A DNA stretch of 64,000 nt, taken from assembly GCA_023515725.1 (NCBI GenBank), contig JALDTO010000146.1, forward strand, positions 1 through 64,000, in the 5' to 3' direction. The position numbers and the translations under genes are program-made. How positions within the stretch are numbered: the first letter of the stretch is position 1; every line of letters begins with the position of its first letter. Positions 44,233-47,736 of the stretch are shown piece after piece. The notes under the pieces were generated by a model, which saw nothing but the letters and a program-made list of their open reading frames with translations, was not told the DNA's origin and made no database searches. The DNA is from Amoeboaphelidium protococcarum X5 (Eukaryota > Fungi > Aphelidiomycota).

Positions 44233-47200
44233 TCAGAACTGGTCAAAAGCATTACCATAATCATCATTTTCTCTAGATTGGCCAACGTCACCTGCCACCT
44301 ACTTACAGTCTTCCTAATCGCGGTTACATGCAGTGTCCAAGCCTGCTTGATCCTATTCACCTCCGCGTACATTCTCTTATCCGCTTTTCCAAGGTATAAA
44401 ATTTCTAGTATCAGCTGCATGGGTGAATCTTGGAATGAAGGGTGGCGCGATTTCTCGTCGTCTTAGCTACTCCCAGTTTATAGATTGGAACCATTTATGA
44501 TTTTTGATCTCTTCCATGCCATTAACACCGAGCCGTTTGCTAGGATTCTTTGTTAATAGAAGTCTAATCAAATCTTTGGCATCCGGATCCATCGACCACG
44601 GGAATTCAACTTGACCATACAGGATCTTTCTATACACATCTTTCACATTAAGGTCATGAAATGGAGTCTAACCCACGAGCATCTCATATATCAGGATACC
44701 AAGAGAGTAGAAATCGACAGCGAATGAATAGCCAAGACCTCTCCTGCCCAGTTCAGCATTAATAATAATCTCAGGAGCCATATACTATGGAGTACCACAA
44801 AAGGTGAACGTTCGTTTGCGCAAATACTTGGCAAATCCAAAATCGGTAAACTTTATATGTCCCATAGCATCAATCAGAATATTCTCTGGTTTTATGTCAC
44901 GATAGATAATCTAGTTACTGTGCAAATGCTCCAAAAATAGGACAACTTCCGCAGCATAAAATCGCGCAGTATCCACATTGAAGCATTTGCGAAGAGTCAA
45001 CTGTGTGAACAATTCACCTCCAATCACAAACTCCATCAGAATGTACAGATTATTCCCGTCTTGCATCGAGCCGACAAAAGACACCACATACTGTGAATTC
45101 AAGTCTGAGAGTATATTACGCTCAGTAATGACATGCTTCACTTCGTTGAGTTTGAATATCTGACTCTTACTCAAGACTTTCATGGCATAGTAGCGATCAG
45201 ACTCGATGTGCCGCACCAAATACACCTTACCAAAAGACCCTCTGCCGATGAATTGGACTTTTTCAAATTATGACAACTTAGGATTCCTCATCTTGAATGA
45301 CAGCTGAGGAGACACAATCTTGATAAACTTTTTAATAAATGGAACAATATGCGCAGAAGCTGTGATCAGAGCCGACATATGACTTGATCCTCTCATCACC
45401 TGCAAATCTTTGAGGTACACTTTGTCAGTCTACTACTCCACCATACTCACAAATTAATGAGCACAAGTAAGCTCATCTTCTGAGCCAATGTACAGACCAA
45501 AGGGGACTTCCATATTACCAAAGAGTGACTAGACATTCTTACAAGTTAACGCGCCCCACAACGGCTAGGAGATGGTGATGGATGAGCTGTCAGAGATTTG
45601 ACACAAAGATCCAAGAGGACTATCATTATTAGAATTTGAGGTGGATGCTGCAGCAGAATTCAAGGCGCTATTAAAGGTGGTGAGTAACTTGACAGAAGCT
45701 GAACTTCTCATAGTGTTAAACCAGTGCTTCTATTCATCGACAGTGTACAGCTTGATCATATTGTGAGTTTTCACCATCCCAGAATCTGCAGTGTTGACGG
45801 ATAGATAATCGATCAGCGGGGATATAAAAAGATAGCCATTCACGGGTTCTCTATAGCGCCAATTTGAGTAGTTAATACAGGCAGAGGCAGCAAAGCCGTG
45901 ACCACCAATAAGCAGTGGAATGTCAGGATTATTAAATTTCAAGTGACACACAAACAATCGGATATCGCTCAGAATCACATCTGTGCTATGAACTATAGAT
46001 GAATTATCAATACCTCGAAGTTCCACGGCGTACACAGCTACTGGCAGTTTACATGATAGGAGCCAAGGGAGAATAAGTTTGAAGTCCATTTGAAATAGAA
46101 TGACGTTAGCTTACACTCGATCATCAGACTGCTATGGCATAAATACGCGATACCGAATATTAAACCCATCATTGGCAACTAAGAATGAACTCTTACCAAA
46201 ATCAAGCTTCAAATCGTTATAAGTTCGTGTGACCAGATCATAATCGAACAGCACGGGATGTTTAAATGGTGCTGGGCCACTCTCATCATCTCGTGGACTC
46301 TTCTCGCCAGTCTACAACTTCCGAGTGGGCACATCTCTAGACGCAGTAGCCTCTATCCACTCCCCCAACGTGGTGGATATCTGCAAAATCACATCAATGT
46401 GTGATGCTTTAGGGATAATGTTCACGGTGGAGCGAACGGAAGATCTCTTGGGAAAATTAACAATCTTGTCAGGCACTATGATTTCTTCACATTCACCAAC
46501 CCAGAAGCCAAACTGTGTATCAATCTTTTCAAACAACTTTTTAGGATTAACTGCATTACAGGCTTTGGCAATATTAGATGACGCCAGATCCATAAAAGTG
46601 CTTTCTACTCTAGCATCATCGTGGTGTATAATCTCATCCTGTGATGAATACCGCTGCAATAAGTTATTAAACGAAGACACCGTTGCAGAGTTCTAATTCA
46701 TACTGGACCTTCGTGATGACTTTAAACTGTCCAGGCTCTTAAAATTGATACTATCTCCAGCCATATAGCCAAAGTGAGGTGAGATAAATATGGCTGCATC
46801 AACTGGTTCCCTCTACCTCCAACCGAGATAATTCAGCACAAGACCACCTTGGAAGTAATGTCCACACAAGAATACAGGAAGACCATCAAAATTGACTTTT
46901 AAATACTAAATGAAGACTTTGATATCCACAAATACTTGATCTTTAGTAGGAGAATATCCTTTTAATCCACCAGATTAACCAAAGCCTCTTAATTCCAAAA
47001 CAAAAGAAATAATGTTATAACTTTTGCTGACTTCATTAGCAATATAATCATAATGTTGACCATTAGCTGCAATCATGACTAGTATAGCCTTTTGATCATC
47101 TAAACCGTCACTTTGATACTATCTGTAGGATAACTTAACACCATCAGTACTGGCAATAAACTCAGATTTAGGCTTCGCTACAGCCTGAAACTTCTTCATG

Positions 47201-47736
47201 GCATTCTACAATCGCATAGACCGCGGAATATCAAATTAGGCACTAACATTCATACGAGACATTCGCTCAATACCGATTCGTCTAGATACACGCTCACTGT
47301 CCACTACATCGGGAATCGAGTGAAGTAATTCCAATTCTCCCTCCACCAGGACAGCGCCGCGCACTTTAGCCATCACAACGTTATTTTCATCAAGCAGGAA
47401 ACCAAACATCATTCGGTCCGTCAGAGCAGCAGGGAGCATCATTTCAAATTGATGGGTACATGCTGTATTCTCCTAGCACACCACAGTACCAATATCCTCC
47501 ATAAAGCCAGACGACAGATCGCTAGAATGAACCATAGGAAAAGCCTTGTGCAGTTTCACGCTGTCAAAGATCTGATCCCTAGTGTAAACAGCCTTAATAG
47601 TCTCAATCTCTGGAGAATTTACAGAAAATTTAAATGTAATTGCAAACTTGTAGTATATTTCCTAATTCTTGGCCTTTTTGTACTCAGATTGATTAGCACG
47701 GCGGCATTGGATGTCATGCAGAGTAACTACACACAT
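44233..47736 (-). CDS. Fusion protein: N-terminal region, two alpha/beta-hydrolase (monoglyceride-lipase-like) pseudo-enzyme domains and a PKA-type AGC kinase (1167 aa)
   Basis: One uninterrupted TAR=Gln frame; '[10 protein letters not shown]...ELRGFGQSGG...[13 protein letters not shown]' and '[10 protein letters not shown]...ELRG...[12 protein letters not shown]'; kinase [35 protein letters not shown], terminal FDQF. Confidence 0.9.

Follow-up and report, generated by a model that had tools for sequence, protein, structure and literature searches.

Protein kinase A (PKA) catalytic subunits are the textbook case of a kinase controlled in trans by a separate regulatory (R) subunit. GID1, D14/KAI2, NDRG, and the neuroligins are receptors or pseudoenzymes with the alpha/beta-hydrolase fold, and they signal via separate partner proteins. 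In bacteria, an RsbQ-type alpha/beta hydrolase is the input part of a sensing module whose outputs vary and include a histidine kinase (PMC3183031). Here we analyzed a gene that joins the two kinds of domain on one chain: two Hydrolase_4-type repeats lacking the nucleophilic serine are followed by a PKA-type kinase. The gene lies on the minus strand of a 64,000-nucleotide (nt) stretch of the Amoeboaphelidium protococcarum X5 genome (contig JALDTO010000146.1, positions 1 to 64,000), referred to below as the window. An earlier note, made from the letters of the window, had proposed a ligand-sensing kinase with tandem dead lipase-like domains. Judged from the sequence, there is about an even chance that the tandem serves in cis as a noncatalytic module that binds a hydrophobic ligand or a lipid surface, and that it governs the activity of the kinase or its location.

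The fusion protein resembles each of these systems in part. PKA catalytic subunits (C-alpha, Tpk1) are the best match of its kinase, and it shares with them the catalytic residues, the activation-loop Thr, the DT.NF segment of the tail, the C-terminal FxxF, and an N-terminal MGN. Unlike these trans-controlled subunits, members of the fusion-kinase family have approximately 830 strongly conserved, lipase-derived, and apparently noncatalytic residues of their own, which replace the short A-helix segment. From the Hydrolase_4 monoacylglycerol lipases (Yju3p, 4zwn; the bacterial type with a GHSSGAGLILN elbow), the repeats retain the RG.G.S.GG.RG loop and the GL(I/V)LN elbow context. They differ in lacking the Ser and, in repeat 1, the oxyanion HG, in having disordered loops as lids, and in being arranged in tandem and fused to a kinase. 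With GID1, D14/KAI2, NDRG, and the neuroligins, the family would share the reuse of a hydrolase fold for binding or signaling, and it spans the range from an intact triad (members P0009 and P0011) to dead domains; in contrast to those proteins, it carries the output kinase on the same chain and the fold in tandem. The RsbQ-type input module is the nearest published concept that we found, although RsbQ is a separate, catalytically competent bacterial protein that acts via a PAS domain and has an architecture not homologous to that of the fusion kinase. We found no description of a Hydrolase_4-kinase fusion in the full-text literature, and the A. protococcarum protein is deposited only as "hypothetical protein," in line with the earlier note, which did not recognize the architecture as a characterized one.

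Whole-protein analyses were performed with database entry KAI3638476.1 (P0078, "hypothetical protein MIR68_002974", A. protococcarum), and earlier searches used stop-free pieces of the frame. The Pfam profile Hydrolase_4 (PF12146) matched P0078 in two stretches with 74.8 bits (cut-off 27). In a six-frame genome search, repeat 1 was matched at profile positions 20-232 of 239 (52.3 bits, E 4.5e-13), and the stop-free piece of repeat 2 gave 20.3 bits (E 3.7e-4). The two repeats align to each other with E 4e-21 over 296 amino acids (aa). Among solved structures, repeat 2 is closest to the yeast monoglyceride lipase 4zwn, in which GHSMGG stands opposite GHGFAA. These matches bear out the previous assignment of both repeats to the Hydrolase_4 type.

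The catalytic positions were read from an alignment to stand-alone relatives, which are bacterial-type alpha/beta hydrolases, some of them annotated as acylglycerol lipase. These relatives carry HGGGAHS, RGHG.S.G.RGD, GGHSSGAGLILN, an acidic DE, and a His. Ser occupies the nucleophile column in 11 of the 12 stand-alone relatives; the fusion protein has Tyr310 (elbow GHYFQ) and Gly630 (elbow GHGFA) there. The acid and the His were found in both repeats, as Glu433 and His462 in repeat 1 and as Asp770 and His802 in repeat 2. Both observations had been made before from the letters, and the loss of the Ser is confirmed against the relatives. According to this alignment, neither hydrolase domain should be able to use a classical Ser nucleophile; the catalytic acid and His are present in both repeats but would be meaningless for catalysis without it.

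A full-length AlphaFold2 (AF2) model was available with a mean predicted local distance difference test score (pLDDT) of 75.6 and a predicted template modeling score (pTM) of 0.62. A fold search with this full-length model returned kinases only, as expected for so long a model. The disordered lid of hydrolase domain 1 harbors a PKA-type phosphorylation site, RRSSM (residues 358-362; 46699-46713), which is conserved within the species and not in the family as a whole; autophosphorylation there is conceivable.

The kinase keeps Lys869, Glu888, Asp963, Asn968, Asp981, and the activation-loop Thr994, and all motifs including the C-terminal FDQF are present. In addition to the whole-protein match, the Pkinase profile matched four stop-free pieces collinearly. 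Structural matches of the kinase part to AGC kinases had Z scores of 37-42, and in the AF2 model the tail is disordered up to the terminal FDQF. Among solved structures, PKA C-alpha (302 bits) and Tpk1 (285 bits) scored above PKG and RSK (250 bits). In a kinase-domain tree, which was built with a small reference set containing one PKA reference and covers neither the branching order nor a single origin firmly, the fusion kinases grouped with the canonical PKA of the same genome (86/88), apart from SGK/Ypk-like and PKG-like kinases. Within them, the ichthyosporean members formed one group and the aphelids plus other assemblies another (98/96). The description of the kinase as intact and PKA-type is confirmed by the complete catalytic residues, the bit scores, and the tree.

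The same genome encodes a canonical stand-alone PKA-C (with TWTLCGTP, FGNLKNG, and a terminal FATF) and at least two loci with tandem cyclic nucleotide monophosphate (cNMP)-binding domains of the R-subunit type. This makes the fusion protein an extra PKA-like paralogue. The earlier note had implied that an in-cis module replaces R-subunit control. The PKA-like character of the kinase stood, whereas the replacement is weakened by the retained canonical PKA-C and tandem cNMP-binding genes. In the canonical PKA-C gene (C98:646500-648700), a 19-codon in-frame insert between GTP and DYLAPE resembles a short unspliced intron.

We weighed whether the fusion protein is a conventional cAMP-controlled PKA isoform whose kinase binds the R subunit of the genome and whose N-terminal 830 residues are an AKAP-like anchor. 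PKA C subunits are the best solved matches, the kinase shares a clade with the PKA of its own genome, and tandem cNMP-binding genes are present. The kinase also keeps the PKA positions Glu127, Glu170, Glu230, His87, Arg194, and Tyr247, which we take to serve substrate Arg recognition and some R contacts. However, a separate canonical PKA-C with its own TWTLCGTP and FxxF exists, and the fusion kinase differs from PKA at Trp196, Lys213, Tyr235, and Phe239, presumably residues for PKI or R-subunit binding, with the aphelid 7-residue insertion falling at Lys213. Taken together, we regard this isoform as decidedly unlikely. The insertion itself falls within residues 1009-1018 (44731-44760), between the P+1 loop and helix F. 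It is common to A. protococcarum and Paraphelidium, whereas neither PKA nor the remaining members of the family have it.

To map the distribution of the architecture, the 126-residue core of repeat 2 was searched exhaustively and without a profile, which yielded 75 proteins. A homologue search with the whole protein or with a 12-member family alignment returned only the protein's own cluster and generic kinases; it missed the 47%-identical Paraphelidium protein and is therefore uninformative on distribution. A Hydrolase_4-then-Pkinase layout was found in 13 clusters (50% identity) from other organisms, of which 12 are full-length or nearly so (980-1384 aa) and one, P0046, has 834 aa. Named members come from Paraphelidium tribonemae, Chromosphaera perkinsii (two paralogues), and Amoebidium parasiticum, and the Paraphelidium orthologue is annotated as a putative PKA catalytic subunit. 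Further members are present in at least seven other assemblies as single open reading frames (ORFs) on gene-dense eukaryotic contigs. The layout also occurs as single ORFs in standard-code organisms. No animal or named fungal members turned up in this search. The architecture, which the earlier note had suggested looking for elsewhere, is thus present in aphelids, ichthyosporeans, and other assemblies. The same result disfavors the proposed role in host sensing: since members occur in the ichthyosporeans C. perkinsii and A. parasiticum and in other organisms, the family is not an adaptation of an algal parasite.

Across the 13 members, the catalytic residues of the kinase are invariant, the activation-loop Thr/Ser is conserved except for an Arg in P0028, and the C-terminus is FxxF or FxxY in most members. 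The domain-1 nucleophile is Ser in none of them (0/13). A complete Ser-Asp-His in domain 2 was found in two, P0009 and Chromosphaera P0011. These two members, together with the His in both domains and the acid residues (Glu in domain 1, Asp in domain 2), are what could be adduced for hydrolase domains that are still enzymes, with a noncanonical nucleophile or an unusual substrate. For the A. protococcarum protein we consider this very improbable, because its nucleophile positions are Tyr and Gly, the latter incapable of a nucleophilic role, and the oxyanion HG is AN in domain 1.

Aphelids stand on the fungal side of the opisthokonts and ichthyosporeans on the animal side. The groups in the small kinase tree are consistent with an old family that an early opisthokont passed on vertically and that many lineages then lost. 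A tree of the hydrolase domains had too weak a resolution for dating the domain duplication. If the shared ancestry is true, the opisthokont ancestor had a second wiring of a PKA-like kinase, seemingly missing in animals and well-studied fungi. The range from intact to dead triads makes the family useful for tracing how enzymes turn into receptors or scaffolds.

A second intact copy of the gene and its flanks is located on contig C264 (1756137-1759640), with approximately 90% DNA identity over 7.6 kb and approximately 97% protein identity, and its frame is likewise uninterrupted. Two sequenced strains each have both homeologs intact, giving four intact orthologous proteins. Between the copies (synonymous divergence, dS, ~0.28), the ratio of nonsynonymous to synonymous divergence (dN/dS) is 0.05 overall, with regional values of 0.022 for hydrolase domain 1, 0.045 for domain 2, 0.036 for the kinase, and 0.07-0.09 for the N-terminal part and the tail. 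Constraint on the dead hydrolase domains is thus no weaker than on the kinase. Many other gene families in this genome likewise come as contig pairs, so two diverged subgenomes or haplotypes seem to be present in the assembly.

The minus-strand frame at 44233-47736 comprises 1167 sense codons and is closed by a lone TGA; TAG occurs in it 21 times and TAA 6 times. Ten TAR/CAR exchanges were detected between the two genomic copies, all at in-frame TAA/TAG positions. As these exchanges with CAA/CAG match the expectation for Gln codons, in-frame TAA and TAG are read as Gln. The single 1167-codon frame given in the earlier note is therefore upheld on code-6 translation, with 27 TAA/TAG codons for Gln and one terminal TGA. 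Its start is not: the ATG at 47736 is intronic, and the actual start is the ATG at 47845, as shown by a splice joint, a deletion in the second copy, and identity to KAI3638476.1. The gene has two exons (44233-47845, minus strand), and its spliced product of 1183 aa has no differences from P0078 in 1183 residues.

The second genomic copy agrees with this gene model. It keeps the ATG and MGNV(S/N)C, and it has a 4-nt deletion within the intron stretch, indicating that this stretch is noncoding. The sole indel in the coding region is 3 nt long and in frame, and upstream of 47845 the indels between the copies have lengths that are not multiples of 3. In the contig data, the intron joint is displaced by one base (47728-47788). 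GT is preceded by A in the window and by G in the second copy, and the one-base shift would be accounted for if the reads carry G before GT.

RNA-like evidence was taken from assembled contigs of four public runs of one 2021 study on a related strain; the runs are not recorded as RNA. The contigs behave like RNA: they have poly(A) loose ends, sharp gene-to-gene changes in depth, an intergenic depth of approximately 0, and a joint that skips 61 nt. Contig depth was unbroken from 44235 to approximately 47974 in all four runs. Contigs bridge every junction between adjacent domains (47006-47667, 46042-46423, and 45199-45402). The uninterrupted frame in both copies and the continuous contig cover point to hydrolase and kinase parts of one spliced, expressed gene. 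No sign of separate hydrolase and kinase genes was seen in these data, and the view of a single gene and protein is retained.

That the fusion is an artefact (two genes read as one, a pseudogene, or an assembly chimera) has nothing in its favor but the 27 apparent stops under the standard code. Against it stand the same open frame in the second copy with a pair dN/dS of 0.05, the four intact orthologues in two strains, the layout as single ORFs in standard-code organisms, and the continuous RNA-like cover across the domain junctions. Its probability is practically negligible.

Upstream of the hydrolase tandem, the protein has further conserved parts. N-myristoylation patterns of the PROSITE type call for a Met-Gly start, an allowed residue at position 3, and a small residue at position 6. 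The N-terminus MGNVSCA matches this pattern (Gly2, Cys6), suggesting a putative lipid anchor, and MG with Ser, Thr, or Cys at position 6 is found in 8 of 13 family members. When a model of the beta-sandwich domain that follows (pLDDT 56) was used for fold searches, only generic Ig-like sandwiches were retrieved (Z up to 8.1, TM <0.5). The lipid-binding sandwiches RhoGDI, UNC119, PDE6D, and NPC2 were considered as relatives and set aside, their Foldseek E values of 0.008-0.03 being too weak to use. A search of residues 1-215 against a protein atlas returned no usable match. In the helical linker, Glu164 is invariant and Arg168 nearly invariant across the family.

If the tandem is a binding module that acts in cis, the following mechanism can be envisaged. 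The kinase is predicted to be active and basophilic, with RRxS-type sites, and an N-terminal lipid anchor would keep it at the membrane. The dead lipase domains, with fold and constraint retained, would bind an acylglycerol, a lysolipid, or a fatty acid, or else a lipid surface, and the module would set the place and time of kinase firing. The signal might be relayed via the last helix of domain 2 into the kinase N-lobe, at the position of the PKA A-helix; in the full-length AF2 model, helix 810-824 (pLDDT >90) ends 15 residues before the kinase. In P0009 and P0011, with Ser-Asp-His in domain 2, the module may still hydrolyze the bound ligand.

Several observations weigh against such a mechanism. 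In real monoacylglycerol lipases, the lids give the substrate pocket its shape; here, both are low-complexity stretches that come out disordered in the AF2 model, and a defined pocket may therefore be absent. No pseudosubstrate or autoinhibitory motif (RRxA/G/S plus a hydrophobic residue) is conserved in the N-terminal 830 residues across the family. The R-subunit-like genes of the genome could control the fusion kinase in the usual way, and the case for N-myristoylation consists of the pattern match. Finally, the contigs of the related strain show presence and splicing, not a single full-length molecule. As individual pseudosubstrate candidates, SRRIGI (~167-172) and RRSSM (358-362) were rejected: both are found in A. 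protococcarum and are not conserved in the family.

It is possible, though we lean against it, that the tandem and the sandwich serve for scaffolding or targeting only, by protein docking or localization after the manner of NDRG proteins or neuroligins, with no small ligand, and that the kinase is under ordinary AGC control by phosphorylation of the activation loop and tail. The loss of nucleophile and oxyanion residues and the disordered lids fit this explanation, as do the activation-loop Thr/Ser, conserved except in P0028, and the FxxF tail kept by most members. Moreover, constraint is strong, yet the catalytic residues drift among lineages, suggesting that surface or fold outweighs the active site. 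In contrast, the His kept in both domains, the Asp in the aphelid domain 2, and the two members with a full domain-2 triad hint that some members still depend on the region of the active site. Even a purely scaffolding module would leave a new and well-defined kinase family, though one of narrower interest.

The lipid-binding reading can be extended to an ancient opisthokont one-component switch from lipid to phosphorylation, in which a duplicated lipase-domain receptor would gate a PKA-type kinase in cis, independently of cAMP and R subunits, with domain 2 still hydrolyzing its ligand in the P0009 and P0011 lineages, a behavior known from the receptor-enzymes D14/KAI2. We hold this extended version to be unlikely. 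Within it, a myristoyl switch formed by the myristoylated N-terminus together with the beta-sandwich might come in addition. The fusion kinase provides a concrete candidate for lipid-controlled signaling in parasites of mass-cultured algae. The features of the gene are listed in Table 1.

Table 1. Features of the fusion-kinase gene (window coordinates) and positions of EF-hand genes on contigs of other organisms
Feature	Residues	Position	Strand	Remarks
Probable 5' untranslated region		47846..47974	-	RNA-like contig depth reaches ~47974, ~0 at 47975-48722 in 4/4 runs
Exon 1	1-19 (MGNVSC...) and first base of codon 20	47788..47845	-	ATG at 47843-47845; splice joint in 4/4 runs
Intron, 61 nt		47727..47787	-	GTGAGT...TAG; contains ATG 47734-47736; splice joint in RNA-like contigs
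Exon 2		44233..47726	-	Uninterrupted code-6 frame; TGA stop at 44233-44235
N-terminal beta-sandwich	~13-145	47350..47726, first strands from exon 1	-	AF2 models, 7-8 strands; conserved across family
Helical linker	148-201	47182..47343	-	Helices 148-173 and 190-201 in full-length AF2 model
Pseudo-hydrolase domain 1	205-481	46342..47172	-	Hydrolase_4 match; pLDDT 81-94; disordered lid 354-399
Pseudo-hydrolase domain 2	515-824	45313..46242	-	Repeat-to-repeat match; pLDDT 79-97; disordered lid 682-736
Oxyanion HG, repeat 1				AN (most stand-alone relatives HG)
Oxyanion HG, repeat 2				Gapped in alignment
Nucleophile position, repeat 1	Tyr310	46855-46857	-	Elbow GHYFQ
Nucleophile position, repeat 2	Gly630	45895-45897	-	Elbow GHGFA
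Acid, repeat 1	Glu433			
Acid, repeat 2	Asp770			
His, repeat 1	His462			
His, repeat 2	His802			
Protein kinase domain	840-1099	44488..45267	-	Pkinase 234 bits; catalytically complete by sequence
AGC C-terminal tail	1100-1183	44236..44487	-	Alignment through PKA GDTSNF (ADTRNF here); ends FDQF-COOH
EF-hand gene		L008 7079-7300		
EF-hand gene		L010 6598-6816		
EF-hand gene		L015 4410-4658		
EF-hand gene		L016 1788-2345		

On four contigs from different organisms, a small EF-hand gene adjoins the fusion-kinase gene or is located within approximately 1.3 kb of it. The EF-hand gene on L016 shares the strand of the kinase ORF and stops 34 nt ahead of it. This linkage could reflect conserved synteny among relatives or a functional partner. 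Contig L010 harbors a tandem pair of fusion-kinase paralogues of 1159 and 1157 aa (1-2628 and 3001-6474). Beside P0009 lies an RPL7 gene, for which the named matches are all fungal, Blastocladiomycota first, among the 120 matches listed; this gives a weak placement.

In the window, a convergent neighbor gene (43374-44186, plus strand) has its poly(A) site at 44186; the kinase gene's stop codon is only 47 nt away. In the four runs, contig depth was 267, 0, 311, and 237 for the neighbor gene and 16, 140, 24, and 73 for the kinase gene, i.e., the trends were opposite. This hints at stage-specific expression, with the caveat that the depth of contigs measures expression poorly. Upstream of the kinase gene, the otherwise silent interval contains a low-depth RNA-like contig at 48146-48464, with a poly(A) loose end after 48464.

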